Below are positions 740 through 58,650 of a DNA stretch of 64,000 bases, one piece after another. The stretch is from Syncephalis fuscata S228. Its lineage: Eukaryota; Fungi; Zoopagomycota. The translations under genes were made by a program, and so were the position numbers. Position 1 is the first letter of the stretch. Every line of letters starts with the position of its first letter. The DNA is taken from assembly GCA_025786725.1 (NCBI GenBank), contig JAHLTZ010000052.1, positions 1 through 64,000 on the forward strand, in the 5' to 3' direction. The notes beneath the pieces were generated by a model. That model was not told the DNA's origin. It made no database searches and worked only from the letters and a program-made list of their open reading frames with translations.

Positions 740-1345
740 ATAGCTAGCGCGTATTTACTGGATAATAAAACGAATATACAAAGTAAAAAGTATGGACAGC
801 AGTGGTATAGCTACTGAGCATATATGCATAATCAATGAGCGACATTAGTCGACAGTTGTTAATAATAACGCTAGAACAAAAATAAAACCAGTTTTGGATT
901 GAGCATAGATGGGCGAGTGTAAAATGACATATAAACGATGTCAAACTATAGCGCATATAACGCAAGGAGAGAATGAGTAGAGTGTGCTGGTGTACTTAAT
1001 GAACAGAATGTGTCCAGTATGTCGTAGAATGATACATAGAAGTGCGGAATAAAAGGGAGTGGTGTAGGTAGATAGAGATATATGCATACTGGATAATAAA
1101 TCTATAATGACAAGTGTTTTAAACTTTGATGTCGCTCACCATCCAGCTCCATGTTCAATAGGTTGAATGTTTAGTTCAAACGCGTAAATAATCAAAATAG
1201 CCATTTAACCACCAAATCACACCAAATGTGATGATTTGATCGTTAATAAAACTCACCACCCGTCCCCATGTTCAATAGAACAAATGTGCAGGCCAGTTGC
1301 GCGAATATCAAAAGTAGCCATTTGACACAAATCACATTAAATGGT
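740..1345 (-). repeat. Family A repeat: double-unit core (1075-1345) plus internal extension
   Basis: Reverse complement aligns with 4570-5200 and 42300-42850, e.g. TATTGAACATGG..TGGTGAG, TAGATTTATTATCCAGTATGCATAT and GTCGACTAATGTCGCTCATT. Confidence 0.9.
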
Positions 1346-1514
1346 TAATAATTGTAATAAACAGTTATTAATAATAAAAATAACTATAATAAAGCTATAA
1401 CGCACTGAGCGGACTGAGTGAAGCTGATTGAAATGCATAATAAATATAAGTGTTCAACCTGTCATTGACTAAGAGTAAGATATAAAGATACATCTTAATG
1501 ATATTGTTGGATTA

Positions 1515-1600
1515 AAAATATATGCATACTGGGTAATAAATCTATGATGATGGTATTTTGGACCCTGACGCCAGGTACTTTAATTTTATGTTCACTAAAA
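1515..1600 (-). repeat. Family A repeat, partial copy
   Basis: ATGCATACTGGGTAATAAATCTATGATGATGGTATTTT is the reverse complement of the conserved family A block. Confidence 0.8.
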
Positions 1601-1643
1601 GGAATGAAAAGAGAGTGGAGTCAAAAGTGGTGGAAGTGAGTCG

Positions 1644-3693
1644 AACGGCTCAGCGGCTTAAATGTTCAACGGTTCAAATGTTCAACGGCTCAAATGTTCA
1701 ACGGTTCAAATGTTCAACGGCTCAAGTGTTCAACGGCTCAAATGTTCAACGACTTAAATGTTCAACGGCTTAAATGTTCAACGGCTCAAATGTTCAACGG
1801 CTCAAATGTTCAACGGCTCAAATGTTCAACGGCTTAAATGTTCAACGGCTTAAATGTTCAACGGCTTAAATGTTCAACGGCTCAAATGTTCAACGGTTCA
1901 AATGTTCAACGGCTCAAGTGTTCAACGGCTCAAATGTTCAACGACTTAAATGTTCAACGGCTCAAATGTTCAACGGCTCAAATGTTCAACGGCTCAAATG
2001 TTCAACGGCTTAAATGTTCAACGGCTTAAATGTTCAACGGCTCAAATGTTCAACGGTTCAAATGTTCAACGGCTCAAATGTTCAACGGTTCAAATGTTCA
2101 ACGGCTCAAATGTTCAACGGCTCAAATGTTCAACGGCTTAAATGTTCAACGGTTTAAATGTTCAACGGTTTAAATGTTCAACGGCTCAAATGTTCAACGG
2201 TTCAAATGTTCAACGGTTTAAATGTTCAACGGTTCAAATGTTCAACGGCTCAAATGTTCAACGGTTCAAATGTTCAACAGCTCAAATGTTCAACGGCTCA
2301 AATGTTCAACGGTTTAAATGTTCAACGGTTTAAATGTTCAACGGTTCAAATGTTCAACGGCTCAAATGTTCAACGGTTCAAATGTTCAACGGCTCAAATG
2401 TTCAACGGTTTAAATGTTCAACGGCTCAAATGTTCAACGGCTCAAATGTTCAACGGCTCAAATGTTCAACGGCTTAAATGTTCAACGGCTTAAATGTTCA
2501 ACGGCTTAAATGTTCAACGGCTCAAATGTTCAACGGTTCAAATGTTCAACGGCTCAAGTGTTCAACGGCTCAAATGTTCAACGACTTAAATGTTCAACGG
2601 CTCAAATGTTCAACGGCTCAAATGTTCAACGGCTCAAATGTTCAACGGCTTAAATGTTCAACGGCTTAAATGTTCAACGGCTCAAATGTTCAACGGTTCA
2701 AATGTTCAACGGCTCAAATGTTCAACGGTTCAAATGTTCAACGGCTCAAATGTTCAACGGCTTAAATGTTCAACGGTTTAAATGTTCAACGGTTTAAATG
2801 TTCAACGGCTCAAATGTTCAACGGTTCAAATGTTCAACGGTTTAAATGTTCAACGGTTCAAATGTTCAACGGCTCAAATGTTCAACGGCTCAAATGTTCA
2901 ACGGCTCAAATGTTCAACGGCTCAAATGTTCAACGGTTTAAATGTTCAACGGTTTAAATGTTCAACGGTTCAAATGTTCAACGGCTCAAATGTTCAACGG
3001 TTCAAATGTTCAACGGCTCAAATGTTCAACGGTTTAAATGTTCAACGGTTTAAATGTTCAACGGTTTAAATGTTCAACGGCTCAAATGTTCAACGGCTCA
3101 AATGTTCAACGGTTTAAATGTTCAACGGCTCAAATGTTCAACGGTTCAAATGTTCAACGGCTCAAATGTTCAACGGCTCAAATGTTCAACGGCTCAAATG
3201 TTCAACGGCTCAAATGTTCAACGGCTCAAATGTTCAACGGCTCAAATGTTCAACGGCTCAAATGTTCAACGGCTCAAATGTTCAACGGCTCAAATGTTCA
3301 ACGGTTTAAATGTTCAACGGTTCAAATGTTCAACGGTTTAAATGTTCAACGGTTTAAATGTTCAACGGCTCAAATGTTCAACGGCTCAAATGTTCAACGG
3401 TTTAAATGTTCAACGGCTCAAATGTTCAACGGCTCAAATGTTCAACGGCTCAAATGTTCAACGGTTTAAATGTTCAACGGTTCAAATGTTCAACGGTTCA
3501 AATGTTCAACGGCTCAAATGTTCAACGGTTCAAATGTTCAACGGCTCAAATGTTCAACGGCTCAAATGTTCAACGGCTCAAATGTTCAACGGCTCAAATG
3601 TTCAACGGTTTAAATGTTCAACGGTTCAAATGTTCAACGGTTTAAATGTTCAACGGTTTAAATGTTCAACGGTTTAAATGTTCAACGGCTCAA
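1644..3693. repeat. Tandem satellite, 16-bp unit AAATGTTCAACGGYTY, about 127 copies
   Basis: Directly visible; variation is almost confined to two C/T positions; rare variants recur at 192-bp and 640-bp offsets. Confidence 0.99.
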
Positions 3694-3879
3694 CAGTCCA
3701 CTCGATGCGTTTTATACACTACGATCTTAACAATGCTGTTTACACTATTCTCATTGCGTATTCATTTTAAAAGACATCACTTTATGTTTACTTAGCTTTG
3801 CTTCATTCAGAACTGTTGTCCTTTTTTCTAGCTTTATTTTTACAAACCTCAGCTGTTTTCGCTCGTTCATTAAGGCTCT

Positions 3880-4400
3880 TTACACCGAATAACTACGCCG
3901 CTGGCATTCATACTTTTTGCTTTGTATATTCGTTCTATTTTATTTTGTTTCATCAAATAATAAATGCGCTTTATTTAACATTTATATTCATTTAATTCGC
4001 TTTGTTAGTTACAACTTTGATATACTTCGCTTAGTCCGCTCATGATTTATTTACAATGCAGCTTCTACTTCATTGTTCGTTTGCTTAATTGCATACCACT
4101 TTTATTTAATAAGCACGTACTACTCATTGTAGTCTTCTACTTGCTAATGGCTTCATTTGTTGTTAAGTCTGCCAACTGCCACTTCTTTCTCTCTACTTTT
4201 ATTCAATATGCTCAGTGTGGCCTCCACTCTATACTGCCAAATACTTGTAAATAACAACTTACTATTTTATATTAGCCACATATTTTGTTTTATCAAATAA
4301 TGGCGTTTGTTAGCCTACTTAAATCTACTGTTACTATGCCATCTGCTATGTTTGCTGTAGTGCTTTGATATGCGCGTGTATATATACTTACGTAAAGAAC
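3880..4400 (+). repeat. Diverged copy of the family A internal extension
   Basis: TCATACTTTTTGCTTTGTATATTCG matches ~5140, and 4105-4260 resembles 5360-5515. Confidence 0.6.
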
Positions 4401-4544
4401 AACTATGTATTTGATTATTCCTTACTATCAGTAAAGATCTTCCAACGCTTTCTAACTAATATTCTACACATTCATATGCGTATATAATTGTCGTTGTGTT
4501 TTTATAACAATAATTATTTATTTAGCTGTCTTATTAAAGCTATT

Positions 4545-5600
4545 GCATTAATATTAAACAGTTTATTAGCCACTTAGTGTAACTTGGGAGACAAATGACT
4601 TTTTAATAATATTCGCGTAATTGGACTACACATCTATTCTATTGAACATGGGACAAGTGGTGAGTTTTATTTAATCATCACATCATCACATTTGTTGTTT
4701 GCTTGGTGGTCAAATGACTATTTTTAATAACATCCAGCCTATTGAACATGATGATGGGCGGTGAGTGACGTCTATCATCAAAATACTCATCATTATAGAT
4801 TCATTATCCAGTATGCATATATCCTCTATTCACGTATACCATTCTTTTATATCCCACACCTCTATATACCATTTTATAACATACTAGGTACATTCTATCA
4901 TCTGTTTGTCCCAATACACTTTTCTCTCTCCATTCATTGCGCTATATACACTATAGCTTTGATGTCGTTTTACATGCTTTCTTACCGTACATTTATCATT
5001 CTATACATCACTCTATACTCGTATAGCCTTGCTCTATCCAAAAATATGTTTATTTCTGTTCTAGCTTTATTATTTATAAATGTCGACTAATGTCGCTCAT
5101 TCACTCATGCATATATGCTTAGTAGCTATACCACTGCTATTCATACTTTTTACTTTATATATTCGTTTCATTCTGTATCGTTCTGTCATATGATAGCCAT
5201 GCGCTACTCAAAACTGCTGTTTATTTGGCGCTAGGTCTATTGGTTGTAAAGCTCAGCTCATTCCTTTCTTATCTCTCATTGGTCCATATACACTGCAGCA
5301 GTTACTTTCCTGTCTATACACTTTAGCGTGTCTACTCGTCTTATTGCGTAGTGCTTTGTTTTCTAATAAACGTGCGCAGTTTGTTACAGTGGTTCACTTG
5401 TTAGTAGCTTTATTTGTTGTAAGATCTGCCGCTTGTCGTTCATGTCTACTTTCATTCAGTCTATTCAGCATGGCCTTCTTCTATGCTGTTGAATATTCGT
5501 AAATAGCAAGCTACAGTTGTTGCAGCGGCTACATAGCCTTTTGTGGTATATAAGCACGCTTGTTAATTGGGTCGAGATTTTTATTACGCCGTCAGCTATT
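4545..5600 (+). repeat. Family A repeat: double-unit core (4570-4830) plus internal extension
   Basis: TAATTGGACTACACATCTATTCTATTGAACATGGG...AAAATACTCATCATTATAGATTCATTATCCAGTATGCATAT; collinear with 42300-42950. Confidence 0.9.
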
Positions 5601-5699
5601 GCTACACGCCGCTACAAATCATTAAACTGTATTGTATATTGTATATTCTGGTAAATCCGTGTTTTGTTTATTTTGAAGTTACAAGGATTATTCAATCGA

Positions 5700-6900
5700 C
5701 AGCTTTTGTTGGTGGTTAATTTGGACTGTCAGCTTATTTATGGCGTAATATGCCAATAACGGCTAGATCAGCGACCACTTCTATACAATACGCGGCACTG
5801 CTCAATTAAATTTGTATACAAGCACTGAAAATTGGATTTATGACTGGAGGATGTTGAATTTGATTCAGCGCTATTAAGTACAGCGGACCGGTGTAACAGC
5901 TTTGCTTTAGCAATGTCGGTTGATATTAGTTCAAATATGCGGTGACAGCATTATTGAAAAGCTGTATTGCTTCTGCGAAAAATGAAGCCATAATATTAAT
6001 GGATATACATTAGACAACCAATCTATTGCGCAAAGCTTTGTTCCAAGTGGATGCAGTAACATCCACTGATTCAGAAATACGTGCATTTGTTAATGTAATG
6101 ATATAGAATAGACAATTAATCAGAATTAAAGTACATTGAATACTAGATATTCCGTATACATCCATTGACGACTGATGCTATTAAGATCGAGGATACACGT
6201 GAGAAATGCTAACTACCTTGTAGCTACTATTTATTTTGTTTCCGTTCATCTTATACTAATACACAGAGTGGTAATTATTTAGAACCATTGTCAGTATTTA
6301 TGACATTGATGCGTAAAGGTATCATTTCATTTCAGCATTGATTAACGTAACATGCACACAGCGTATTACGTTGTATCCAGTAGCTGATCAATTATGTTGC
6401 TGTTCTACTTAATGTAATTGATCATGTAATTGTCGACGATATATCTGATGGATTTGCACTGCTTATTGGCAATCTACAACTGGGAATCGGTGGTATTGGT
6501 GAGCTGTTGTTGATTCATAATTAAACAGAACAAAGTAATATGTTCCGTTGAATTAAGCATATTCAAAAGAAGATAACAAGATTAATATAGCTTCTTAATA
6601 TTAAAGCCAATGTGATGGTGAATTAATTAAATAATGCAATAAATAAGTTGACAGTGAAATTAGACCACACCTTGGCAATAATCAAGACACGTATGAGTAT
6701 ATTTAGCATATGGTATGATAGTGATACTTTGACATAGATTATTTGATTAATGTATTACAGACTATAGAGCATTACGAAAAGACTATTGTGCATGTGCACA
6801 GCAACTATTTTGGTACAGATTAATATTGAGCTAATACAGCTATTTAAAGTTTCCAACGATGTTATGACGAAGTTAATAGTTTTGACACTGGAATAGTGCC
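5700..6900 (+). pseudogene. Degenerate spliced gene relic, product unknown
   Basis: Coding-like patches (TTNLLRKALFQVDAVTSTDSEIRAFVN; VAVLLNVIDHVIVDDISDGFALLIGNLQLGIGGI) end at GT donor-like sites and are interrupted by stops. Confidence 0.3.
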
Positions 6901-8349
6901 AATGAACGTTATTACAGAGCGCTATATAATGAATATGTATTAATTATAATATATAAACAGCTACATTACCAGTATGGATAATTGTATAATATGTATAAAC
7001 ATTAATAACCAATTAAGCAGGTGTCAATGGCTGGTAGTGAATATGAAAACATTAAATTACTGTTGTCATCAACGTATAGACAGTTATATTAGTTAGCTGA
7101 CAATGACAACATTGTAATATTGCTCATGATTACTATAAAATTAGCATTATTCTATTGACAAAATCATATTGTTAATATCTATTTAAAATAGAAGAAGTTA
7201 ATAGCAAGTGTTATTGGCATATAGCTAACCAAACGCTATTAATCCATGTTGTTTACCAACTAGCCGGTTGAATACTATCTACTAATACCCGCTAATTAGC
7301 TATATCAACTGATTAAAAATAACCAGTATGATATTGTATCAATGCTTTGTTAAGCAAATATGCTAGTAATTGCGCGTCAACATTAATAAATTATGGATAT
7401 TTGATTATTTCGATAGCCAGCATTATATTAACTGACCATATAGTAATCAAATAAGACACAGTATCGATAACAGCCGGCTATAGGTTAATAGACATATAAC
7501 ATGGGTATCAGTTAATTATATGGTTACATTAGTACTATCTGCTATTGTGTATTACTGGTTGCTGGTCGACAGTTAGTGTTGAATATACTGCGTGAATCAT
7601 TGGCATGATATAGCTACTGATACTAACAGTTAGCAATTGCTATTATACAACTTAATACCATCATAAACTAATGCTATATATTGCAGTGCAACAACTAGGA
7701 ATTGGCAAAAAGTCGCTATTTGTATTGCCAACGGCAATGGTGAGCTGTGTTTAATAAAATGCCACAATTGAAATTATTGTTCAAGATTACCAATCGTCAA
7801 TATAAACACGTATACTAATACTGGCTATTGAGAATTGTTATACCAGTTTTTACTGGTTAATTGGTGACACAGGTAGTAAAGCTAGTATTGGTACTTGCCA
7901 ATTTGAAACATATCTACAAATAACATGAACAGTTAACGTCTGCTTGTTTAGTAAGTGGCAGCATAATATGCACTGTTACTAGCTGATGACTATGCATAAA
8001 ATTTGATTTTGTATACCAGCAACAGTATGGTGTGCGCACCAATGGACAATAATATACCAATGGCTGTTATTGTTATACACACCATTACATAATTGTATAC
8101 GGTATGTAGCCAAAATCATCATTGCCTGTATAACACATTTATAGCCATTAACATTGTCAGTACTATTACTGATGACTGATAGCATCTGTATAGCTGCCAG
8201 CGGCAATGCCACATAACATGATCTACCAACAATGCAGGCTACACTTAATACACGTCACCACCAATGCTAATAAAACAACCAATATACATGATTATTATAC
8301 CGTTCATAGCACGTGTGGCCAACGGTGTACCATTGCGTGCTATTGTGCT

Positions 8350-8770
8350 ATGATACACATACTGTAGCTATATGCAATACCAATCATTAATATATTTATT
8401 AATTATATTATGTCACCGACTTTATTAGTTGGTCAACATAATTAGCAAATCGACAACAATTATTAACGGCCAGTTATGGCTGCATAAATGAATACTGTCA
8501 AGTTACAATTGATTGGCTATTAAGCAATCGATACATTTTTTAATTAGTATTTGTGTGGGCTTTTATTGTCAAAATAACAAAAAAAGGACTATTATAGCTT
8601 TTATTAATAATTTTATCAAATTTTGATTATATCAATAATACAGCTAGAAATACGTAATAGCATCTACTATAACCGCATGGCCTTGACGCATTGGCGCATA
8701 TAAATGACTTATGTTGGAAAAATCGTGAAAAGGCACTCAAATAGAAATGGCAACATTATCATTAAAATAT
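8350..8770 (+). repeat. Family B dispersed repeat
   Basis: Aligns with 29830-30230 (GCCAGTTATGG..GCATAAAT, TTAGTATTTGTGTG, ACCGCAT..GCATATAAAT) and with the reverse complement of 30235-30600. Confidence 0.8.
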
Positions 8771-9439
8771 TAATAATATTTAATATATATTGGCCGTCGG
8801 CACGTATTTTGATTACAATCAACCATAATGACGCTACTATTTATTTTGTAATTATAGCAATTAGTTTTATTGCTGGTGTTGCATGCGTACTAACATACGT
8901 TTCAACAGCTGTATGCTGATTTATGTTGCTTAAATATACTGCTTATTAATACAGCAGCCAATATGTGCATCTTGCTGGCGTGTATTGACATTGATCGCCT
9001 TTGATGTCAGTTAAATATTATCACCAACATTGCAACTATAACGAGCGGTGATTGCCGTATTTATACTTACTAATAGACATTGCCATTGCTGTTGCTTTCT
9101 TGTATCGTTGAATGTGTATGTATATGGATATCAACTATTTGACATGATGTTTATACCGTGATGCTGATTCCCATTGTAATTCCATGCCTAACCTGATTAT
9201 AATTATTAGCAAATACAGCTATTTTTTACAAACGTTTTAACATTTAGCCTACCTTAAATACGTTACAAAATTAACATTAGTATAATATCTAGTAGCTTTG
9301 TTATGCCATTCAATTATTTGAACTGTACTATACTGCTAGCATACTAAAATTAGCTACAGTTTATATAGTTACACCTACACTAGTTATTTTAATAATAACA
9401 ATAATAATTTGTTTGATTGTTTTAATTGTGTTAAGGCTA

Positions 9440-9640
9440 GTATAATAATATTAAATAGTTTATTAGCAATATAGTGTGATGTGAAAGTTAAATGCTTAAA
9501 GCTATTGATACTTGGACAATTGAACTACGTGTTTATTTTATTGAGCATGGAACTGTGTGGTGGATGGCATCAGTCATTAAAATACTCATCATCATAGATT
9601 TAGTAGCTAGTATGCATATGCCTTTCTATCCACCCATATC
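9440..9640 (+). repeat. Family A repeat, single unit
   Basis: CAATTGAACTACGTGTTTATTTTATTGAGCATGGAACT...AAAATACTCATCATCATAGATTT..AGTATGCATAT. Confidence 0.88.
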
Positions 9641-10084
9641 ATTGCTATTCTGTATTTATTAGGTCATATATTGCTTGATCATATAATGAGCACAACCTAT
9701 TTACAGCAGGTATTTTATTGTCACTAGCTTTATTTGCTATAGTTTCAATTCATCGTACTTACTTAATCGTCTATGTATATCTTCACTATTATTTTAGCAA
9801 TTCATTCCGTTCTAAACTGTTCTATACTCTACTCATTATGTCTTATTGATAAAACTCGTTTATCTGTTACTAGTCGTATTATCTGTAGATTTTGACATAA
9901 TTGCTTGTGCAATACGCATACTATACCTTTATTACTAGTATTTTACACTTTATTTGACCATTCATTTGGATGTATATTATTCCATAGTATAACACGGTAA
10001 GAAAAGACGGCTTGTGATCTTTTTAAAGGTTAGTATTATTTGAAAACAAAACACAGTGCATGAATTCAAACAGCAACACTAACA

Positions 10085-11080
10085 CTACATACCTAAATAT
10101 CTATGTAAGAATAACAGTTGATTAAATAGTAAGCAGTTTGAAGTAAAAATAAGCAAATATTTATTACATAGCAGTGCCAGTTGTCTTACCATAGTAAACA
10201 GCCGATTATAAGAGCGTACATAGCTATTTGTGCTATACCGTCTTTGTCCGCACAATAACACATGGTTCAATAAAACATAACAATGCTTACCTGTAACTTC
10301 AAAGAAACGGTAAATGCTTCAGATGTAGACTGATAGAACATAGCTAGAAACTGACAAACAGCAAACCGTCACAAACATTGACACCAGTTACAGTACCGGC
10401 TCACGACAATTAGTGCAATAATTAGAATGTAAATAAAGCACCGTACAAGCACCGCTGGCTACATACTAAGCAGTATGCTATGGAAGATGCTGGCAATTAA
10501 ACGACAGCATATACACCAATGTCCGCTCATAGATTACAGAGCCTGTAGCCGTTAGTGATAATGATCAAATAGCAACATTTGCTTAAATATACTACAGTCC
10601 ACAAAGTTAACGTGTTAGATCTTGCATTAGTTGTTGCATTTGAAAACGCCAATGTTTAGAAAGAAATAGTGTTGAGCGAAAATGTTCAGGTAATGGAATC
10701 AAACAAAGAAGGTACTTGGTAGAGAAGTAACAGCGCATATAGCCATCACAGTCCTCGTATTGATAGCTGTGCACATACAGTAATAGCAACAGTAGCAACC
10801 CGCGCTGGTACTGGCGCTGAAGACTTACTTAGCGACTATACTAGCAGTTTGATCTACTAATATTGGTGGTGTATGCATACAGCAGCTGTACCTGAAGACT
10901 GTGCTGGCTATATGCCGCCAGAATCACTGTATACGCTGTTTTTTCTAGAGAATGCCACCACAGATCGTACTGACAGCAGCTTGTACCGGCTCGACAGTAG
11001 TAGATCACACTGCCACTGTTGAAATAGTAAAGCTGTTGCCAGATGACTTGTAGTGGCAATCTATAGCAAAACATAGCATA
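10085..11080 (-). pseudogene. Possible decayed paralogue of orphan gene X (44926-45700)
   Basis: Weak collinear peptide similarity: LPLQVIWQQLYY vs MPLPVVQKRLFS; APVPARVATVAI vs APAQPTKAAVAI; NRLFTMVRQ..LLFNQL vs NKQLTAVHR..YLFNGL. Many stops. Confidence 0.35.
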
Positions 11081-11430
11081 TGCTTAACACAACATAAAAA
11101 CAAGCCAGAAATGTGCTTTACTGTGCTAATAAAGGTGCTAACGTTAATGACCAAAGTGAAAAAGCTGTTTTGCAAAAAAAGGGTTTAGATTACAAAAGAG
11201 TAATGCAAGAGAATAATGTAAATAGTGTTTGTACTTGACTAGTAGTCAGGCAACTACTAACACTATCTAGTTAGCATATATGGAGTGTACAAGTATATGC
11301 AATGGGTATATGTTGTCAAGTGTAAAGAAAGAGAAAGGAAAATGTGATGACGTAGATTGTGAGCTGTGAGCCTGTCAGTCAATATTTATAAACAGCCGAG
11401 TTTAATTCATTAATAAATGGAGTGTAAATA

Positions 11431-11680
11431 ATAAAAGTCAATCTACCCAACATGTCGGTACATCATAGAACAGATTAATAGTAAATGAAGAATAAAAGTC
11501 ATTTTACCACCAAAACTACTCGTTATTATAGAACATATATTCAGTATATTAAAAGATCAATTAAAAAAATAAAAATCATTTACACCCAAAAAACACTCAT
11601 CATCATAGAACATGTTGTCAGTATAACAGCGAATGTATTAAAAGAATAAAGTCATTTGACACCAAAATCATTAAAACATA
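11431..11680. repeat. Degenerate ~60-77 bp tandem repeat (3.5 units) made of family A pieces
   Basis: Units start AATAAAAGTCATT..ACC.AAA (reverse complement of the family A left arm) and contain ACTCATCATCATAGA (forward family A block). Confidence 0.7.
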
Positions 11681-11849: not shown

Positions 11850-14252
11850 CTAATATGCACCTTTATTGAGGCGGCATTTTCGGAGGGGAATCGACCGTTT
11901 GGCAGCACCTTGTGATTTGTATTTTGAGTAGCATCGGCGTTTTAGGCGGCGTCGCTGTAAAAGCTTAGGCGCTAGCCGCTGCTTCTTTGTTGTTGGCCCA
12001 GATGCTGCTTGTGTTGTTGTTGTTATTGGTGGTGATGGTGATGGTGCCGTTGCTGTTGCTGTTGCTGGTGGTATTGTTGCTACTATTGGTGCAACTACTA
12101 TAGGTGTAGCAGTTGCTGATGTTGTTGCTACTGGCTCTTCTGCGGCTTCTGGTGTCAAGTCTTCACCAGTAAGCCAAGGGCAGGCCAGTGCCTGCTCGGC
12201 CGTAGGCCGCTTGTCGCTGTTGATATTTAGCAACTGCTGCATCAGGTCAACGGCTGCGAAATATTAGTTACTGTTAATAAAGACATAGTAAGCTTACCTT
12301 TTTTACTTGGCCCATTTGTTTGTTCCTGGCCAAACGGGACCGAAGCTTGCAGTATATTTTTCATATACTGTTCCACATCACCACCGTCGCCGTAAGGACA
12401 CGTTTCTAAATGGCAGTATGTAATAGTTAGTATAGTATTTTGCTTTTATTTGTACTTACTGAAGAACATTTTGTAGAGCACCGCGCCCAGGCTCCACATG
12501 TCCGCGGCCTTCCCACAGCCACTAACATCCAGCAGTGCTGGTGTTAATTGGCTTTTAAGACGCGAGTCTTCGTTGATGATATCAAGCAAAGACTCGCGCT
12601 TGTTTGTCCCAAACAGCACCTCTGGTGCCATATAGGGAGTGGTGCCGCCAAACGTGTCGACAGTTGTCGACGAGCGCAGGATGTGCGCAATCCCAAAGTC
12701 TGCATAAAGAACATTGGGACCTTCGCAACCACCTAGCAGCAATATATTGCTAGGCTATTCAAATGTTAATAATGGTCATGTATATCAAATAATTACTTAC
12801 TTTTATGTCTAAATAGTAATAGTAATAACAGTAATAACAGTAGTTAGTAATTGTGCTAATAAATATATAGTGTACTTACCACGGTGGATTACATCTTTGC
12901 TGTGAAGGAACTAATAAAGTGTTAGTGTTTTAATTGATATTTTGTAATAATACTTACTTGAATCCCTTCAAGCAACTGTTTGAAGATATGTTTTATTTCC
13001 ATCTCTGGAAGTGAAGCATGATGCTTCAGGTAGTGACTTAGGTCACCGCCCGCCACGTATTGAAGAATTAAATACGTGTTGACGGGAGTGGCCTTGGCAT
13101 CCAGCAGCTTTATGATTCGAGAGTGGCTGCCCACCCACTCCAAAGCTTTAACTTCATTGTCGAAGCTGCTGGTGTCTTCATCAGCCGGTGAGATCTTGAT
13201 TGCGACGCGCTCACGCGTCGCTCGGTCTCTTCCCAGGTACACTGTACCATACCCGCCCCTGTTACAAATAATATATTATTTATCTAACTATTTGTTTAAT
13301 TTAAGTACTTACTTGCCAAGGATTTCTTCCATGATCAAGTATTTCATGTCGATTCTCTACAGCATAATAAAAGTTATATGCTAATGATATTTAAATATAT
13401 TATAAACCTACTTGTTTTGATATTGAGTTGTCATTTAGTTGGGCAGGGGGAGTGCGTTTAACAACATGTATATTGAACACAGCTGTTTTACATGGTTAAT
13501 AATGATTATAATAAAAATAGTTACTACTTACTCGTACAGCCAGGTATTGTAATAACACAATTACCAATGGCTGTTTTTGCTTGGTCCATACGAACTTCAG
13601 CGTCGTTTACTAAACCAAATGTTAGCAATTTAATTAACATTACTATTCAAACTAACCCATTACTATTGGTAAACCGCAGTTCTGAATATTTGATTAGTAA
13701 TAAAGCTGTTAAATAACCATTTACTTACTGCAATTGTAATGGTATCATTGTGCTGTGCCTATTAATAATTAATATTGGTTTGCTAAAATATATGGTGTAC
13801 TTACTACTGATACTTGAAAACAAAACTGAGGCTGGAATTCAGCATCTAGTTGATAGTCGCTATTTGAAGTACAATATACTGTTAATTTACCGTTATGTAC
13901 ATTTTTTAAATAGTTACCAGCAGATACCAGGTCCAGCGTAGAATTGTTTATCGGCGGCCAAAACAAATTCTAAAAATCCAGTACTTAGCTATACAGATAC
14001 TCAGTGCTAGCATAACATACCTTTGGATGTCAAGTCGCATACTTGAATCCATGCAACAGCGCTAGCGCGCTTTTCTGCAGACAAATCATTCCAGCAGTTT
14101 GGAACATTTGTATACATAAGGTCTTCATTTTGTAAAAGACCCGAAGAGTGTCCAGCAGAAGCTACTGCTACGACACGAGGAGTGGAAAGCGGCATGTAAA
14201 TACTAGCATTTGAAAGCGAAATAGAGGATTGCTCAGTATTTGAAGAGTTCAT
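11850..14252 (-). CDS. Multi-exon Ser/Thr protein kinase (CAMK group, Chk2/Dun1-like layout) with degenerate N-terminal FHA-like region and a Thr/Ala-rich then basic tail
   Basis: Spliced motifs LGKGGYGTV, VAIK, HRDIKPSN (via an 8-nt exon at 12801-12808), DFG, APE, DMWSLG, KRPTAEQALACPW; small 5' exons AGPGICCDYQL, VNDAEV, CVITIPG. Confidence 0.9.
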
Positions 14253-16800
14253 GATGGTACAAATATCAAATACAAGTGGTATGAATGACTAGTTTTAACG
14301 TAAAAAAAGAGCACTGAAGTAAAGTGGTAGCAAAAGATAAAGCGAAAGATGCAATACGTTGTGTTATTCATAAATTTAAAGACACACAATATTATAATAT
14401 CAACCAGTATTGAGGGTAGTAAAGCAATAATACTTTATTGTACAAATAGTCTAGCGCTGCATTTGCTGTAGTATGTTCTGCTTACTGATGCTATAGCTCA
14501 GTCCTAAGCTGTATAGCAAACTATTGCGCATATCGGTATTTTATATAGTCACTTGGCTAAGCATGCATGTGCCACATCATACTGGTTTTCATGTTGGCCT
14601 TTGCAGTCGATATGGTTACGTGTTTATTCCTGTTTTTACTTCATAACTTTAACGGACTTTGTAGTGTAATATGAACAACGTGTATTTTATTTCTATTTAG
14701 TGGCATTGAAACTCAATCGGTGAATTATGCTATAGACCATATTTCTAAAGAAAAGTAGTCATTTTTATTTAACTAATACAGTAATAAATTGTGTGGATCG
14801 ACTGATTTAATTGTGTGCGAATGGCAAGAATACTTGGGGGAAAGCAAAAATACCCGCTAGACCCTGAAAATATTGATAGCATCGGAAAGAGCCGCTATTA
14901 TAGTGGTACAACTGATTAAGAATGGTTGCATTTGGCTATGTTTCAGTTGTATTGGCCAATTGATTCAACTAGCCAGTGTAGATATGCTGATTATGCGCGG
15001 AAATGACCAGCAAATGGAAGGCAAAAAGTGATTGAATATGGAAATAAGGAAGGGATTATAATCCAATTTACTGATAAGATGGTATCTGGCATTAGAAGGT
15101 TTCAGTCAGTTGCAATACGCCAATGAGCAGCTACCACATACTATTTACCAATATTGTCCATTCTAATTGGTAGATATGTTTTGGGGCAATTTTATAAGGC
15201 TGTGTTGAGATTACTTTTGCTCATTACTTCGCCTTCTCCTGTTTCTAGTTGTTAATGTGCTGTAAACCGTTTGTTAATGGTTAGCATTAAATCTAGTAGT
15301 TACATCCAGTGGTGTGGGGTCCCCTTGTTGGTTGATCACGATATACTGTGTTCTTGCTTTTGAGCTGTGTTGAATGTGCAATACAGTATTTGCAGACTGC
15401 TGTATTATACTGGCTCAACAATTATATGGCTGCCCGTAATAGGCGGCTGTATACTAGTGTAGTGCGGAGATATGTGGGATGCTGGAGCGTGCAGTGATAG
15501 GACATAAGTCGGTATTGCTGCACGCTCTCTCATGGGGGACGCTAGGGCGCACAGTATTAGCTTAATACTGCTCTATGCTCCCTCCTGTAAAGGCTAGAGC
15601 GCGCAGCAACAGTATTTAGCAAGTCAGTTATTGCTGTGTGTTTCCCTCATATGGATGCGGCGACCTGTGATGGGTGGCCATATGTTAGTGCTCACCTGTT
15701 TGTAACGCGCGCTGGAGGTGTGTTGGTATTGTTCAACTTGCTGAACACTGCCATCACACACTGGATTGATGAGATATGTGGTTCATCTGGGTGGATGTGT
15801 CCATATATCACCTACTGTTTACTTGCGGGTGTTGTTAAACGATTGTGATATAGCGTTAGTCTCAAATATCATCTAAAGTGCTTGCATTACACCGTAGGAG
15901 GATTGAACTGTCTGAGGCTGCCTTCATTGTGATTAAGCATAATATGATATTTCTGCGGCTGTTTACAACGTGGCAAAAGCTGCGTTATTTTGCAGCTTTA
16001 ATAGCGCATCAGCATATGACATGTGTTGTTTAGTTGTAATACACTGCAACATCTATGTGTGCTTAGCTTTATACATTAGCTACAATTGGGTGAACCAGTA
16101 GTTTAGTGATGTTTATTGCTGCACTTGAATTGCTACATTGCATTATAACATTATTAAATAACATCGTCATCTTGACGGCAGCTGGTAGAAAGCTATGTGC
16201 TTCTGACGAATGTTACTTATGCCCGAGTTGTAGTACTATCAGTATTCCAGGTGGACATATAGTTTTTTTATCAGCTGTCATCTCGATTAACAACTTTCAA
16301 CAACTTTTTTAGTTTAATTTTTATAATGTTTGTATAATACTTAGTAACAATAGCCAAACAACAAACAATCACATCACATGTGCATTATAGACTACATATG
16401 AACAACGACCAACTAAATGTATAATACTTTATTACTACTAAACAACACTACAAATCTTGTTATAGTCCTTCAAATATTGGTGCCAAATCGACAAGTTATC
16501 TGGATCGCATTTATCATCACTTTGCATTCAATTTACAATACCAATTATTGCTTTCATCAGCACAAGTACTAACAGTAGTATTATGCATTGTTGTTGATGC
16601 TATCACTTGACATGGTTTTCCAGATGGAGGGAGTGAATATATACCCATTTGGTTTTTTATCCGGTCAAGTGTCAATTGATATTGTTATTGCATGCCTGTT
16701 AAGTTTGTTAATCAATAAACAAAGTGGCAGTGGCATAAATTAGGAATTATATGTTAAACTAAAAGAATTTTAATAAAGTGTATGAATGTTTATTAAAGCA
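13345..16800 (-). repeat. Segmental duplication, inverted copy of 60545-64000
   Basis: Near-identical reverse complement; matching ORF pairs 14007/63093, 15636/61503, 16106/61038, 13492/63630. Confidence 0.97.
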
Positions 16801-16964
16801 ACATAGTATTAGCACAGCGACTCTACCACCACCATTTATATATTTTCTTGTTATATTTATTTGATTAAAAAAGTTATTGGTATTTGAATAACTAAATTAC
16901 AATAAATTACATCTTATATAACTATATCACATTACACAGGTTATCTAATAAACGGCTTGTTGAT

Positions 16965-17160
16965 TTCTAGTATGATTTGGGAATCAGATGAGTGACACTA
17001 AATAGCTTTTGTTTTATTGAACATGGAACTAGACGGTGAATAACATCAACTATCAAAATACTCATTGTTATAAATTTACTATCCAACATGCATATATCCT
17101 CTATCCACATAAATCATCTCCATTATATATTCATACTATTATGTTACATTTTTATTAAAA
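16965..17160 (+). repeat. Family A repeat, single unit
   Basis: TTTTATTGAACATGGAACTAGACGGTGAATAACATCAACTATCAAAATACTCATTGTTATAAATTTACTATCCAACATGCATAT. Confidence 0.85.
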
Positions 17161-31720: not shown

Positions 31721-31974
31721 ACTATATGCAATTTATAGTATGCTAAACGCATTTATTTATTATAGTTTGCGATGCGTTTTAATCATTCCACTCATTGGTG
31801 ACATGCACTATAGCTTCAAACTGCCGATTTTGTAAGTATCGCTGTATACTAAATATACCGCATATTGTTTTAGCATATGACAATGCAATTATCTATAAAT
31901 TGCTGCCAGTTTGGCCCTGGATTTATTGATAGTATATCGCAACTCACATGTGTATAGAATGTTAATAGTATGTG

Positions 31975-32140: not shown

Positions 32141-32452
32141 GGTGAGTTATTTATAAAAACAATTGTGTATTATTACACGCAGTTAGACAAAATAAAGTAT
32201 ATAAACTTGTCATTATCATATTGCATATTATGTCAGTTGTATAGTTGAGCTGTTATGATTATTATGCAACGTCCTTGTACTAGTCAAATATATTTGTACA
32301 AATGAATGCTGTGTATCTAATTGTTGTAAATGCAATAAAATCATTAATTAGATTAATGTAATATTTAATACTCATCCAAATATTACTTCATAGCCAGATT
32401 ATTGCCTTGAATCAGCTGCTAGTTCAAAATTGTGTTGCTGTATTTTGTTGCC

Positions 32453-35882: not shown

Positions 35883-35976
35883 CATTATTATTTATACATA
35901 AAAACTATTGCGCTGCACTAAAATTTGATATTTATTAATAAAACTAACAAATAGAACAAATAGTTTGCAGAGTGAT

Positions 35977-42289: not shown

Positions 42290-42950
42290 CTATTAACTAT
42301 TTAATGTAATTTGGGAACAAATGAATAAATATAGCAGTATTCGTATAATTGAACTGCACATTCAATCTATTGAACATGGGGACAAGTGGTTAGTTTTATT
42401 TAATCAGCACATCATCACATTTATTGTTTGCTTGGTGGTCAAATGACTAAATTTAATAACATACAATCTACTGAACATGATGGGTGGTAAGCAACATCAA
42501 TCATTAAATACCCATCATCATAGATTTATCATTTAGTATGTATATATGCTCTATTTGTTTATATCATTCCCATTCTGTTACACACTACTATATATCATTT
42601 TATGATATATTAGGTACATTTTATTCATTATATGCTGCAATAAACTTTGCTCATTATGCTCATTACGCTATACACACTGTAACTTTAATATTGTTTTATA
42701 TACTTTTTCACCGTACGTTTATCATTTTATATATCGTTCCATAATCTCTTGGCATCACTCTATCCAAAACTGCTTTTATTTTTGTTCTAGCTTTATTATT
42801 TATAAATGTCGACTAATTCCGCTCATTGATCATGCATATATGCTTAATAACTCAAACACCGTTTTCATATTCTTTCCATTTTATGCTCACTTTAGTATAT
42901 AGTAACTGTACTTTTTTTGAAACTGTTTTACCGTCTGGCGCTAGCCCTAC
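42290..42950 (+). repeat. Family A repeat: double-unit core plus extension
   Basis: TAATGTAATTTGGGAACAAATGA..TTCGTATAATTGAACTGCACATTCAATCTATTGAACATGGGG; collinear with 4570-5240. Confidence 0.9.
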
Positions 42951-45779
42951 TCGTTATGCATTTTGTTTATTTCACTCGTTCGTTCATGCATGTATAACAC
43001 TATAACGTTAATACTACTATTCATACACTTTTCTTTTCCATATTGTTTATTTACACGCTGCATAGTCTAATAGCTATGCGTTATTCGTAAAAGTAGCCTA
43101 CTTGTTGCTAACTATGTTTGTTGAAAGGCTCGACCTAGGCCGCTTCAATTGCTCATTACGTGTATGCATAGAACTTTGCCGCTAATAGCATGCACCATTT
43201 AAAGTAGGTGTTGCTATTATAGTATAATGTCGGTTAAAGAGGTGAAGTAAATAGGTGTTACAAGCCTTTTATATTGCTCATTAGAAAATAATCACAACGT
43301 GCTTCATAGCTACTTAAACAAAAGCAAAACGTATAAGCAATAGAAACAGAACCACTAATAATGTCGATCAAGGTATAGCTTAGTTGGTGACGTTGCAACG
43401 CTACGATAACCAACCAAATGCAGTCTCACACTTCGTTCCCATATAGGCAGAATAGCAAACATATGCTGTTTAGGATACGATATCAACAAATTATAATTAT
43501 GCTTGAACATTCGAGATTATTAAAACAAGCTAGTTATTTTGGTATAATGCCAACCGATCTGGATACCAGCGCATTCAAGCAACTAAACTATTAATACATC
43601 AATAATCTACTGATAATCGGACAGCTTATAATTTATGTTAAAGCACAAAGCAAAGGCAGCTACTACTAATAATGCTGCCGAGTATAACTAAGTACATAAT
43701 TGCCTGTGTATACATAAATATACTGCCAAGTACTTGTGCAATATTGTATCTAGTATATCAAATCCACTACAACTATACCCACTAAATACACGTTTATGTT
43801 ATAAGGCTCACATACGATAGATAATAACAACTATTGTTTTTATATAACAATGAAGCTAGTAAAAGCTGCTGTAACAATGAGCTTGTTGCAGTAAGATAAA
43901 ATGACGTCTATCTATATGAATAACAAGACTACGGTGACTACAACGCATCTATCAACAAACCACCTTTAAAACCACGTTTCAATATAAACGTGTTGTATAA
44001 AGCATTGACATTGTTTATGGTTGTTAGAAATATACAGATATACTGGAATATAAATCAATCAACTAAGTAATGAAGCAATCGTATAAATAGCAATACACTG
44101 TGTATTATGACTATCAGAATTTGTACAAGTGACTTGAATAAATATTATTATATATTATTACAGCTACATGTATTGTATAAATGGTCTGTTATTGTTTCAG
44201 CCGTGTACGCGCGTTATTAATACGCGACAATCATGGTGGTGGCGTATTTATGAAAAGTAAACACAAGATCACGTGTTATGTGTCTATTTGCTGTTGTGAT
44301 CACGCCATCTAGTTTATTGGACTACTTACCGGTTTAGCAAGGTGTACACGGACCATTTGATATTCATGTCCGATGCAGGCCTGTTTTGGTTAGTGAGCTC
44401 GTATTGAACTACACAAGACAATAGTGATACTACAAGTTGTACATACAAATACTCGATACGAATAAATGATGGTACAAGCTACTGGTGTGTGAGTGTAAAA
44501 TAGTTGAGTGGCAATTTATTGTGTAAAAAGCCGCGCAAGATTGATATTTAGATCTCTATAACGCTTTCATCTTGTTTGTTTTATCTTGTCTTTTTGTTCT
44601 ACTACAATATTGTAGTTTCATTTCCTTGTTTTTTGTTATAAAAACTTTTTTAAAGGTAAGCAAGTGTTGCGTTTGCGTCTACGTTTGTCAGTGAATGGGA
44701 ATATTATTGCTGCGCCAAGTTGCGCTGTTGCATAACACGTTGCGTTGCACCTGTGTTTGATTTGTTTAGCCGTGCAGTGCATTCTTGGCGTTTGCTTAAA
44801 ACTGTTCATCCATTTGAATTGAATAGTTTATTTGGTTATGCTGTGTTTGTATTCGCATTAAATATACTATTTACATGGTATTAATTGTATGTATTGTGTG
44901 TTTTTATAGCGTAAAGTAGTTAGCGATGGCTGCTACAGTTGTTTATACCCGTAGCATTATTTATGCTACGATGCCATTGCCTGTCGTCCAGAAACGTTTG
45001 TTTTCTGAGACGGACATTGAGGCAGGCAGTAAGCCGGCTTTGAAAAAAGCCAAGCTGCCAGAGTCTGTGCCAGTCGCAACACAGGCTCTATTGCCTCCAA
45101 ATATCCGCTGCGTAGGAACGCAAGCGGAGACTGCTTTGTGCAGCGTTGCTGTTCAAACCGAGGAGGTTTTGAGCAGCAACAAAGCAGTCAACACCACCAT
45201 CACTAGCCTTTCCGGCTTTTCATTCAGTAGTCATTACTACTGCTCCTCGTCCTCCTCCTCTATCCACACCACTCCTATGGATGGTGTGGAATACACCGGC
45301 GCCCTCAAATTGGCACCGGCTCAACCAACCAAGGCTGCTGTTGCGATCAACAGCACTTATCGGGTAGTTCCGCGGGGTGGGGGACCTCGCCGAACTGCCG
45401 CCTCAAGACTGCGCCGTCGCACTGCTGTGCGCAACGCTAAAAAGGAACACTTGCGCCATTAAGCGCAAGTAAATGCAAGTCTGTACAACATGGTAAGTTA
45501 ATGCAAAATTAACTAAAACAGTGCTAACTTTATTCTAGGCAATAGTACATTGGGCGGGACCAATAAGCAACTAACTGCTGTACACCGGGCCCGTCGTTCT
45601 ATATTGGAACTGATAGGGACTGGGAACAGCAGCTACCTGTTTAATGGGCTAGCCCATATTCGCAGTATCACAAGTGGTTTTATGTTAGTTTTATATTTTT
45701 GTATCAATAAATCAGTTTATAAGCATTACTCATCAGTGTACTCTAATACGAATACTAACCATTAAGCAATCATTATTTG
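42346..45779 (+). repeat. Right arm of the ~3.43-kb inverted duplication
   Basis: Identity with the reverse complement of 32453-35882 starts at TAATTGAAC and ends at CATTATTTG. Confidence 0.98.
44926..45462 (+). CDS. Orphan gene X, 178 aa, low complexity, basic C terminus
   Basis: GC-richer ORF preceded by an intron-like GTAAGC(44656)..TTTATAG(44909) and followed by GTAAGT..TTCTAG; no family recognised. Confidence 0.6.
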   Translation: MAATVVYTRSIIYATMPLPVVQKRLFSETDIEAGSKPALKKAKLPESVPVATQALLPPNIRCVGTQAETALCSVAVQTEEVLSSNKAVNTTITSLSGFSFSSHYYCSSSSSSIHTTPMDGVEYTGALKLAPAQPTKAAVAINSTYRVVPRGGGPRRTAASRLRRRTAVRNAKKEHLRH

Positions 45780-45870
45780 TGTAATTGAACCAGGAATTTG
45801 TTTTATTTACTATGGGACTGGATGGTAAATAGCATAAAATATCAAAATAATCATTGTATACGCACTCTAT
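45780..45870 (+). repeat. Family A right-arm fragment at the duplication breakpoint
   Basis: TGTAATTGAACCAGGAATTTGTTTTATTTACTATGGGACTGGATGGTAAATAGCATAAAATATCAAAATAATCATTGTATA aligns with the 17000-17070 copy. Confidence 0.75.
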
Positions 45871-55562: not shown

Positions 55563-55629
55563 AACAGTTAATATGACTAAATGAGAGAATTATGGTAACG
55601 TCATTAGTATTAAAAAATGGCACTTATGT

Positions 55630-55960
55630 ATCATAGATTTATTATCCAATACACACATATTCTCTATTTATCTATATCATTCCTACCGCATGCTCATACT
55701 ATCCTATATCAGTTATAATACACTGGCTACGCCATATTTTATAGGTTTCAAACAAATATAGACCGATGAGTGGAATGAGTTGAAATTAGGTACAGGTTGT
55801 TGAGAATAGAACTAGAAATAAACAAACTACAGTTGCGAGTAAACATCAAATAGTAGTTAGTAGAATGGATATTCAATGGAAAGAGTATAAACAACGTTGA
55901 TATAGCTGTAGTACATGGAGCGCAATGAGTAGATTGCGTAAAGTACATTGCAACATATAG
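55630..55960. repeat. Family A fragments (55630-55700 on +; internal extension 55750-55960 on -)
   Basis: ATCATAGATTTATTATCCAATAC; GAACTAGAAATAAAC and GCGCAATGA resemble the reverse complement of 4930-5110. Confidence 0.65.
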
Positions 55961-56430
55961 CAAATATAGATGCTGTTATTACTGTTTATTGAAGCATGCT
56001 CATTACTAACCAACTATCTATCTTTAATAAACATGTAATTTACTATATTTGAGTACAGTATGGCAAAAGTAACAGTGTACAGCGATAGTAGTGTTAGCTA
56101 GTTTATGCATGCTAGATTACTATGCATAAGCAATAGGTAGCGGAAGCTGTAACACTATGACTTGTTTTGTTAAATAAAGTCAGCCATGTTATGCTTATTT
56201 TCTAAAGTCTTTTGTCACTTTTTACTTAATCGTGCTATCATGTATTTCTATTGTATTTGATTATTCTATTTTCAATTGCTATAAATTATACATGACATAT
56301 TTAAATTTGTTCTAAACTGTTTATCAAAATAACTATGAGATACAGTTTATTTGTTTTTTGCACATATAACAGTTCTGAGGCATGATGATCAGATTTTTTG
56401 GGCTACCATCTGGATCGCGCATAAACATTT

Positions 56431-56720
56431 GGGCGACAATGTTAGTAGAGTCGTATGAGTAAGCTATTCCTACGCGTAGCTGTCGGAGATCAAATCTGGT
56501 TAAAGACACCGACGAGTTAAGAATAAGCCCCACCAGCACAAATCGCCTTTTTCGTATAATAAAAAATTCAAGTTACAATAAAGTAGTCTAATACGAAAAA
56601 GACGATGCAGCAAGGCTGGTGGGCCTTGTTCTTAAGATAATCGGGAGAGACAGATTTGCCAACTGGCAGCATAAGGAAAGCTTACAAGTACAGCTCTACA
56701 AAGCATTGTCGCCCTTTTTT
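56431..56720 (+). other. 284-nt imperfect foldback followed by T6; candidate structured RNA or palindromic element
   Basis: GGGCGACAATG/CATTGTCGCCC, GTAGAG/CTCTAC, GTAAGCT/AGCTTAC, CAAATCTG/CAGATTTG, CCCACCAGC/GCTGGTGGG and CTTTTTCGTAT/ATACGAAAAAG pair in nested order. Confidence 0.8.
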
Positions 56721-57829
56721 AAAAATGCAAAAACAATTGTCATGTCTATGTTATTTTATATTTTGCATGATATTTTGCTTAATATTAATATGCTAATACA
56801 CTTCACTGGTAGCATGCCACGTCATTTAATACATTTACTTGCACTATTGTTAATTAAACAGTAGTATATTAATTATTGTGTATTGCTGAAGTATTTATCG
56901 GTGTGGCTATAGTTATATTGTGCCGACCAATAAACGTCCACCAATCAAGTAGCTGATGATAGTATTATCAACACGCAACATACCTCAGTATCGAAATAGC
57001 CGATCAGTTATTCCTTAATAAAATACCAATTTCTATTCTTACTTTCGTTTACTGTGTTGAAAGATGATTGTTAGAATGAGCAGTGTGTTTATAAATTACG
57101 CTGCCCCAACGACTATATAAATAACCTATTTTGGTATCAAGGCTATAATAATATCGTCTTTTTTTATTATTTCATCACTTAACACAATAGCTGTACTCTT
57201 GGTTTTTCAATTGCTACTGAAAACATAAGAGTAGCTGTCTGCTACTACGGTGCTACCTAAGTACGCGTTACAAGTGCAGCTGACTAATCATTCATATAGC
57301 TTCCACACCTACACCATCTTTTTCTCTGCCCTTAAAGTGTTGCAGCCGTATACAGTAGCAAATAATAAACTGTCTATCATGCTTCAAAGGCAACTGTTGC
57401 TATACAAGAGCAGATAAACCTTACTATATAACTTATTTTGATACGCACTACTTTTTAATTAACAGATACTATTTTTATTTATGTATAAAGCAGCTTCTAT
57501 TGTCACTATTTTATTTGTAGTAGCAATATTCTAGTATATCCAACCGTATTGTATAGCTAATCGTTTAGTTATTTACGTATTTATTTATACTTGCTTAGTT
57601 ATATACGATACATTTGCCCATGCACTATACATAACTATTTATTTATATAGTACTACTGTTTTATTATGTCGTACAGCTCAATTGTATATATAGCTGCGTA
57701 ATGTAGCCATTTACCATTTTATTCGCCTATGTAATAATTTATCGATACAATCATTTTGTTGTGTTATATATAGTTGTCCAATTACATCGTATATATTTGA
57801 GTTTCTTTATTTTTACCTGTATTTTATTA

Positions 57830-58040
57830 ACAAAATAGTGTAATTTAAAGGCTAAATGATTACATTCGATATCATTTGCGTAGTTAAACTACACATTTGT
57901 ACTATTGAACATGGCACTGGGTAGTGAGCGACAGCAGTCAGTAAAATACTCATCATCATAGATTCATTATCCAGTACGCATATAGCATTTATTCATATAA
58001 ATTATCCCCATTATATACCCCATACTATCATAGATCATTT
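57830..58040 (+). repeat. Family A repeat
   Basis: TAGTTAAACTACACATTTGTACTATTGAACATGGCACTGGGTAGTGAGCGAC...AAAATACTCATCATCATAGATTCATTATCCAGTACGCATAT. Confidence 0.9.
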
Positions 58041-58489
58041 TATTAATGCTGGAAGCCTTTTAATTTTTATTTGTTCTAATAAGTTTTGTACATTTCACTT
58101 GTTGAATTATATACACAATAAATTCAACGCCAATTATCACACTTTTTCAACTGTATGCTCACTATGTTGTATATCGTTTTATATTTGCATAGCTTTGTTT
58201 GGCCCAAAGCTGTTTTCCTCTTATTCTGGTTATATTCCTAATAAAATTGTATATATTTATACATTTTTATTGATTTGTTCTATGCAAGCTACGGGTTGTT
58301 CAGAACCGTTGTTCGTTTAATTATAGCCATATTATTAATAAATAGCAACCTATTGAACCCATTAAAATATATGTACTTAAAAGCTATAGCAAGTAAAATG
58401 TATTTGATAAGCGTGAAATAATATATAATAATATAAAGATATAATGGTACTTATATCAATTTATAAAGTATGTGTGTGTGCAGGGCAAT

Positions 58490-58650
58490 GTTAATAATGA
58501 TAAGTATATGGTTATTATTTCAATGGTGCCATTTACCACCCGGCTTAATATTTAATAAAATAAACGTTTAGTTCAAATTGCGCAAATGTTATTAGTTTTA
58601 GCCATTTGACCACCAAAGCCATATTAGACTGTTAATAGACTGTTTAATAT
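58490..58650 (-). repeat. Family A repeat, diverged
   Basis: Reverse complement reads TTGGTGGTCAAATGGCTA..TTTGCGCAATTTGAACTAAACGTTTATTTTATTAAATAT..GGGTGGTAAATGGCACCA. Confidence 0.75.

Follow-up and report, generated by a model that had tools for sequence, protein, structure and literature searches.

Family A is a repeated non-coding sequence that recurs in a 64,000-nucleotide stretch of the genome of the fungus Syncephalis fuscata S228 (positions 1-64,000 of contig JAHLTZ010000052.1, our C320:1-64000; hereafter the window). We conclude, with a probability of about 0.6, that family A is the conserved head of a high-copy, non-coding dispersed repeat that derives from a mobile element of the non-autonomous foldback or miniature inverted-repeat transposable element (MITE) type, and that its copies provide dispersed homology for rearrangements and form no cassette system. 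A sequence-only reading of the window had proposed a short protein-bound site, with two motifs at a fixed 21-bp spacing, that delimits and shuffles gene-bearing blocks through an enzyme acting in trans. Family A is otherwise unclassified as a repeat family. The window has few long open reading frames (ORFs) and its genes are in pieces (ABC transporter, protein kinase, SDR and LPMO genes), and it is therefore the DNA of a eukaryote with split genes. Its GC content is 30-42%, no tRNA genes were found in it, and the assembly to which it belongs comprises 29.4 Mb in 371 contigs. L-numbers below denote loci retrieved from this genome, and C-numbers denote its contigs.

Extent and architecture of family A

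The motifs that had drawn attention to family A are real. At one mismatch or fewer, TTRRAC-N15-TTGAACAT had seven matches in the window against 0.27 expected (at 1151 on the minus strand, 4621, 9520, 31583, 35851 on the minus strand, 42349 and 57884), and the conserved 36-mer block was found five times at three mismatches or fewer against 0 expected. An nhmmer profile built from approximately 13 full copies, to which all model positions refer, detected 13 family-A loci or fragments on both strands of the window, in agreement with the approximately 14 copies in both orientations that had been claimed. TTGAACAT by itself is a misleading marker of family A because 126 of its 137 matches in the window fall inside a 16-bp satellite at 1650-3693.

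What had been described as a short non-coding site is indeed non-coding, and no ORF was found in family A, but it makes up only the opening ~270 bp of a repeat that is 650 bp long or more. Homology depth along the copy at 4300-5500 showed that approximately 20 independent loci have ~4553-5142 in common, well beyond 270 bp. The repeat unit consists of a ~240-bp head, a ~250-bp body and then ~150-bp tail repeats in variable number. The head is made of two tandem subrepeats of ~100 bp, each with GTCAAATGAC, an AT-rich stretch, CTATTGAACATG and GGTGAGT, and the first subrepeat has an additional ~21 bp containing the TAATTGAAC motif; a variant with one subrepeat was common in the profile search. 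A 26-mer from the head had 1,013 matches across the 29 Mb of the genome, 505 of them forward and 508 reverse, compared with 0 for a control sequence, and the 271-bp head used as a query returned 1,229 first-look candidates genome-wide. A metagenome scan with the head found nothing.

Many loci share a foldback layout, in which a long arm (model ~5-650) and an inverted short arm (model ~15 to 290-380) are separated by a gap of 100-500 bp, with both heads facing outward. Examples are L015, L016, L018, L020, L026, L027, L029 and L030, as well as 31512-32159 and 57816-58656 in the window, and the compact units measure 0.65-1.4 kb. Relative to the sequences compared here, the DNA on both sides of L018 1482-2518, L020 1473-2417, L029 831-1784 and L015 656-1797 is unique; at these four loci and at 57816-58656, inverted repeats lie at both ends of a discrete unit with unrelated flanks. 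The two arms of a unit were 88-95% identical to each other in seven of ten units, compared with a mean of 80-86% to arms elsewhere. The compact family-A loci are discrete foldback units of approximately 1 kb. Foldback elements and MITEs (Drosophila FB and MITEs with long terminal inverted repeats, TIRs) resemble family A in being non-coding, with ~1,000 dispersed copies on both strands, in having units of ~1 kb that mostly consist of two inverted arms with internal subrepeats and in which the arms of one unit are the most alike, and in being tied to local inverted rearrangements.

The window contains full copies, fragments and foldback units. The reference copy, delimited by homology depth and the profile, is a full-length unit at 4536-5356 on the plus strand (model 2-649) with one extra tail repeat at 5193-5356. 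On the minus strand, a full-length unit at 458-1369 (model 20-640 at 762-1369; E=4e-148) has extra tail repeats at 458-727 and is 72% identical to the copy at 4563-5172. Partial copies were found by the profile at 1395-1572 on the minus strand (model 235-415, confirmed by reading the sequence), adjoining the satellite, and at 3694-3949 on the plus strand (model 394-648); the satellite itself lies between two inward-facing family-A heads. A full-length copy of the one-subrepeat variant occupies 9436-9980 on the plus strand (model 5-120 joined to 208-647). We considered whether the direct copies at 4536 and 9436 form a pair of long terminal repeats and rejected this, as they are only ~70% alike with no coding DNA between them. 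The foldback unit at 31512-32159 is old and compact, with a long arm at 31512-31924 on the plus strand, an inverted short arm at 31953-32159 on the minus strand and arms that are 77% alike; that at 57816-58656 has its long arm at 57816-58245 on the plus strand and its inverted short arm at 58383-58656 on the minus strand. In both units, matched by the profile, the heads face outward. The profile also matched an inverted pair of fragments at 55629-55966 (model 258-378 on the plus strand and 364-573 on the minus strand).

Spacing, decay and signals in the head

Of 19 copies aligned from different parts of the genome, 18 retain the 21-bp spacing. Deletion and insertion frequencies were 0-0.03 per site over the whole head (model 60-290), and the spacer, which had been expected to be depleted of insertions and deletions, was no freer of them than the rest of the 240-bp head; the 21-bp spacing is therefore not special and, judged from these alignments, is inherited by common descent. 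It would have come down from an ancestral copy, where a small internal TTGAAC duplication probably gave rise to it. The TTGAA-N7-TTCAA dyad does occur, but in only ~3-4 of the 19 copies, and conserved inverted binding arms around a short crossover spacer, as at a recombinase site, were not found. The proposed iteron-like or recombinase site is not supported, given an unexceptional spacer, an unconserved dyad and the scattered junction positions described below. Iteron arrays and integron attC sites have in common with family A repeated short motifs at helical-turn spacing and one duplication edge at the motif; unlike them, family A has its motif pair within a 650-bp repeat that is conserved throughout, lacks a conserved dyad and a cassette structure, and resides in a eukaryotic genome.

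The copies appear to decay almost uniformly and roughly neutrally. Among copies not chosen by the head query, identity to the consensus was 84.6% in the head and 78.2% in the body, and the two parts were equal in most. At first the head showed fewer shared variants and seemed to be under constraint; we rejected this reading because the head had served as the query that retrieved these loci, which biases the comparison, and unbiased copies differ little. A structured or known RNA gene was likewise rejected: Rfam families had no match in the window, and no covariation for an RNA fold was found (the RNAalifold covariation term was 0.03 and the fold was weak). GT and YAG were each retained in 18 of the 19 copies, and the adjacent positions of the splice consensus vary like the background.

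Inverted duplications and the 2.9-kb body family

Two recent inverted duplications are present in the window, one pairing 32453-35882 with 45779-42346 at 99.8% identity and the other pairing 13346-16811 with 64000-60533 at 97%. The first forms two 3.43-kb arms with a kinase gene between them. The left arm (32453-35882, minus strand) comprises family A from model ~81 (35328-35886) and a 2.9-kb body with an orphan ORF at 32771-33303 on the minus strand that carries a frameshift; the right arm (42346-45779, plus strand) comprises family A and a 2.9-kb body with an intact orphan ORF of 178 amino acids at 44926-45462 on the plus strand. The right arm begins inside a full-length family-A unit detected by the profile (42277-43185, plus strand; model 16-643 and a tail repeat), exactly at TAATTGAAC in the head (42346), and in the right copy the duplication is followed by TGTAATTGAAC. 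The proposal that family A punctuates accessory blocks rests on this one exact edge, 35882/42346, whereas the other edge, 16811/60533, lies outside family A. The spacer between the 3.43-kb arms also contains a direct duplication of ~485 bp at 92% identity (40144-40629 and 40855-41337).

The 2.9-kb body behind family A (42867-45779 and 32453-35360 in the window) belongs to a dispersed family with at least 23 diverged copies at 72-87% identity, at least 14 of which have family A directly upstream in the same orientation and at the same divergence (72-79%). Several copies end alike on the 3' side, at query position 3569-3580. No Pfam or Atlas entry matched the 178-amino-acid ORF, which has a basic C terminus; at least 20 paralogues keep it open, with amino-acid identities of 30-66%. 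The DNA upstream of it (query 700-2740) is 72-78% conserved, better than the ORF itself (~30% amino-acid identity in distant copies), which suggests that the body may encode a conserved non-coding product. Directly after the right arm lies a degenerate family-A head (45780-45854, plus strand), and the sequence past that arm (45769-45854) is 74% like the short arm past the left arm (32017-32100). Since the 2.9-kb family is dispersed, its ORF is open in paralogues and the two flanks are 74% alike, both loci are old paralogous units consisting of family A, body and short arm. What looked like a 3.43-kb insertion at TAATTGAAC, and so like a gene block being delimited and shuffled, is better read as a recent duplication or conversion that homogenised two old, pre-existing inverted paralogous units. 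TAATTGAAC marks the start of the conserved core after a hypervariable 60-80 bp, and weaker alignments also begin there (5 of 14 hits). A 99% copy of the 3.43-kb-arm locus is present on contig C74. One old copy of family A probably became the fixed 5' flank of the 2.9-kb gene family and is copied along with it.

It is possible, if unlikely, that family A is instead a functional module of promoter, first exon and first intron that drives the 2.9-kb unit. Each subrepeat would provide a factor site, a TATA-like stretch, an ATG and a GTGAGT donor, TTATCCAG would be the acceptor, and the other copies would have arisen as dispersed or decayed duplicates of this 5' sequence, or as a mobile promoter cassette. 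The same-orientation family A directly upstream of at least 14 of 23 bodies, equally diverged, speaks for such a module, as do the GT and YAG kept in 18 of 19 copies each, but there are ~1,000 head copies compared with only tens of bodies, most full copies (4536, 9436 and the compact units among them) are not followed by a body of this kind, splice positions +5 and +6 are as variable as their neighbours and the copies decay near-uniformly. In a related form, which we regard as improbable, family A would be a mobile promoter and first-intron cassette (factor site, ATG, GTGAGT donor and YAG acceptor) that seeds transcription units; one landing would have founded a 2.9-kb family of RNAs and orphan ORFs that travels with kinase genes, and inverted copies would drive the palindromic duplications that are frequent in this genome.

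Breakpoints had been expected to concentrate at the motif, but in a small sample the edges of rearrangements fell at several positions in the repeat (model about -18, 59, 81 and 593) or 165 bp outside a copy. The 97% duplication, at least 3.47 kb long and extending to the window end, has its start at the 5' end of the kinase gene at 12446-13384 on the minus strand, and its edge is not in family A; a head fragment matched by the profile (16976-17151, plus strand; model 170-342) lies 165 bp past the edge at 16811. The duplication of L022 and L024 ends at model ~593. The first ~10 kb of the window (1-10357) recurs in ten or more small contigs, as large palindromes at 89-100% identity (L061-L066, which are C26, C99, C217, C237, C225 and C159, are among them); in C26, C99, C217 and others the inner edges lie at window positions 4518 and 4593, and satellite lengths vary. 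These contigs may represent a palindrome that truly exists in several copies, or else assembled haplotigs.

The 16-bp satellite, TCAACGGCTCAAATGT, was identified by TRF as ~128 copies with 94% matches. Genome-wide, it occurs only in C320, C159, C225, C237 and C287, which repeat this locus, and its edge looks like amplified local sequence (GAGCCGTTCGAC). The satellite was rejected as a general partner of family A, being confined to this locus and its duplicate contigs and having only an 8-mer in common with the head.

Ends, partners and alternative origins

Several observations weigh against a foldback or MITE-type element. The outermost 60 bp are the least conserved part of the head, which is unusual for TIR ends; no exact termini or terminal motif could be defined for family-A units; and no consistent direct repeat that could be a target-site duplication (TSD) was found at the approximate ends of eight units. 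In a subfamily, 250-480 bp of extra sequence, called U (156 first-look candidates), lie outside the head, which may place the head in a subterminal or an internal position. No autonomous element sharing the ends of family A was found (Helitron Rep, DDE_3 and the resident MULE were examined; hAT, PIF and others were not searched). Finally, the GT...YAG signals and the ATG in the head, together with its fixed place 5' of a gene family, would leave room for a transcriptional role. Family A differs from known foldback elements and MITEs in that no sharp ends, TSD or transposase partner was found for it, in its poorly conserved outer 60 bp and in its unequal arms. Arm homology begins near TTAAACAGTTTATTAG, in AT-rich DNA, and the TTAA that precedes many heads belongs to the conserved sequence. 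Three apparently sharp ends, L026:1077, L023:1036 and L023:985, were rejected because they coincide with the limit of the query copy or of an adjacent or nested repeat (a Fanzor tail); the apparent sharp ends of U proved to be junctions with remnant tails of a dead Fanzor1 element.

Known transposon classes were compared with family A in turn. Tc1/mariner was rejected as a partner, as DDE_3 had no matches in the genome. A resident MULE family of 2.4 kb has 205-bp TIRs starting with GGGAAATTTTG and a 9-bp TSD (TACTTTTTA in L067), with copies at L067 596-3021 (G000:C90:22407-24832) and L068-L076 and open frames of 204-243 amino acids over the MULE domain. Because its copies are 92-99% alike, this family may have been active recently. 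MULE and Pack-MULE elements, which have long TIRs, a 9-bp TSD and captured host DNA, resemble family A in their long inverted arms, and a seemingly intact family is present in this genome, but the resident TIRs have no similarity to family A, on which ground this MULE was rejected as the partner, and no 9-bp TSD was seen at the approximate ends of family-A units. Helitrons have a reputation for gene capture. They (including the Helitron2 carriers of Fanzor1) lack a TSD, and none was found at the approximate ends of family A; unlike them, family A occurs in inverted pairs, and at its approximate, undefined ends we saw no 5'-TC, CTRR-3', 3' hairpin or A/T insertion. The Helitron Rep domain (PF14214) gave no candidate in the genome, a weak negative, as the control genomes also gave none. 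We therefore rejected a Helitron, and the rolling-circle origin suggested by the sequence-only reading is not supported, subject to the same weakness.

DIRS-type elements have inverted terminal repeats and produce no TSD. The genome contains six DIRS-like loci, in two families of three copies, in which a reverse transcriptase is followed by a Phage_integrase-type tyrosine-recombinase domain in long open frames of 540-991 amino acids (C34:4025-6534, C201:365965-368555, C344:44838-47428, C90:123599-126096, C312:60572-63069 and C314:20339-28094). The tyrosine recombinase of these retroelements, or of a Crypton-like element, might move family A through a circular intermediate, which is the nearest workable form of the cassette idea. 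This would account for the inverted arms, for the lack of sharp ends and for our failure to find a TSD at the approximate ends of family A. We hold it improbable nonetheless, given that family A is far higher in copy number (~1,000 head copies compared with only six loci), that the candidate dyad is not conserved as a recombinase-type core site and that junctions are not at one fixed position.

Some family-A copies are nested in dead Fanzor tails. Fanzor Zn-ribbon remnants number 87 candidates genome-wide, and several tens of Fanzor1 tail remnants (L031-L060; L017 1066-1191 and 2255-2852) consist of the Zn-ribbon and a 3' non-coding end of ~400 bp. Between CACAATAAA and CATTTAAATAAA in these tails the stretch has variants of 0, ~90 and ~1,060 bp, the last being an insertion of U, family A and tail. 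In L017, such a U-A-tail unit (1191-2255) lies between the Fanzor right end (1066-1191) and the Fanzor C-terminal region (2255-2852). Zygomycete carriers of Fanzor1 have been placed in the MuDR superfamily (Bao and Jurka 2013, PMC3627910).

These neighbours raise the question of whether family A and U are the non-coding part of a transposon that once carried a Fanzor1 gene, such that the copies would be deletion derivatives and not an independent family. The arrangement in L017 would fit this origin, and Fanzor end pieces lie 0-510 bp from U in ~7 of 30 U copies, with patchy similarity of U to the Fanzor 3' region. We nevertheless think it doubtful and give it little weight: a family-A piece lies 1.5 kb away or closer at only 6 of 30 Fanzor-tail loci, about as many as copy density predicts; the junctions in L017, L023 and L027, the three that were examined, are not alike; the DNA around compact units is unique and has no Fanzor sequence close by; and family A is antisense where it lies between the Fanzor stop and right end, which is what a nested insertion would look like. 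Among these remnants, which include no intact element, family A lies inside or beside the tails with varying junctions and does not form the ends of a Fanzor-carrying element. A separate repeat at window 10994-11667, to which the family-A profile had no match, is 78-84% common to loci beside Fanzor tails (L041 293-715 and L053 2656-3183).

The reading of family A as a specialised iteron-like recombination site or rolling-circle origin by which gene cassettes are delimited and shuffled is largely refuted and scarcely credible: the recent 3.43-kb duplication does start exactly at TAATTGAAC, with another TAATTGAAC after the right copy, and the palindromic contigs have their inner edges at the head start or close to it, but that second TAATTGAAC is in a 74%-diverged paralogous short arm, TAATTGAAC simply marks where the conserved core starts after the hypervariable stretch, the block belongs to an old dispersed family that already has family A at its 5' end, other duplication edges lie elsewhere, descent accounts for the spacing and no Helitron Rep was found (the weak negative noted above).

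Together, these observations favour family A as a non-autonomous DNA element of foldback or MITE type that would be spread by an enzyme encoded elsewhere. The claim of an enzyme acting in trans on non-coding DNA survives weakly in this form, since a non-autonomous mobile element is almost certainly spread that way; as a system for shuffling gene blocks it does not. Because the copies are numerous, similar and often inverted, they probably act as dispersed homology, and the edges of local inverted duplications or gene conversions sometimes fall within them. Annotation of this genome should treat the ~1,000 family-A units, along with U and the Fanzor tails, as repeats to be masked, and any 'inverted-repeat cassettes' flagged in it should be checked for an origin by repeat-mediated duplication or conversion before other readings are considered. 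The 3.4-kb arms around the kinase gene belong to a dispersed family whose members combine family A with a non-coding stretch that is conserved and an orphan ORF that evolves fast. If the promoter and intron reading or the link to a recombinase were true, family A would be an instructive example of a mobile regulatory cassette in a fungus of an early-diverging lineage.

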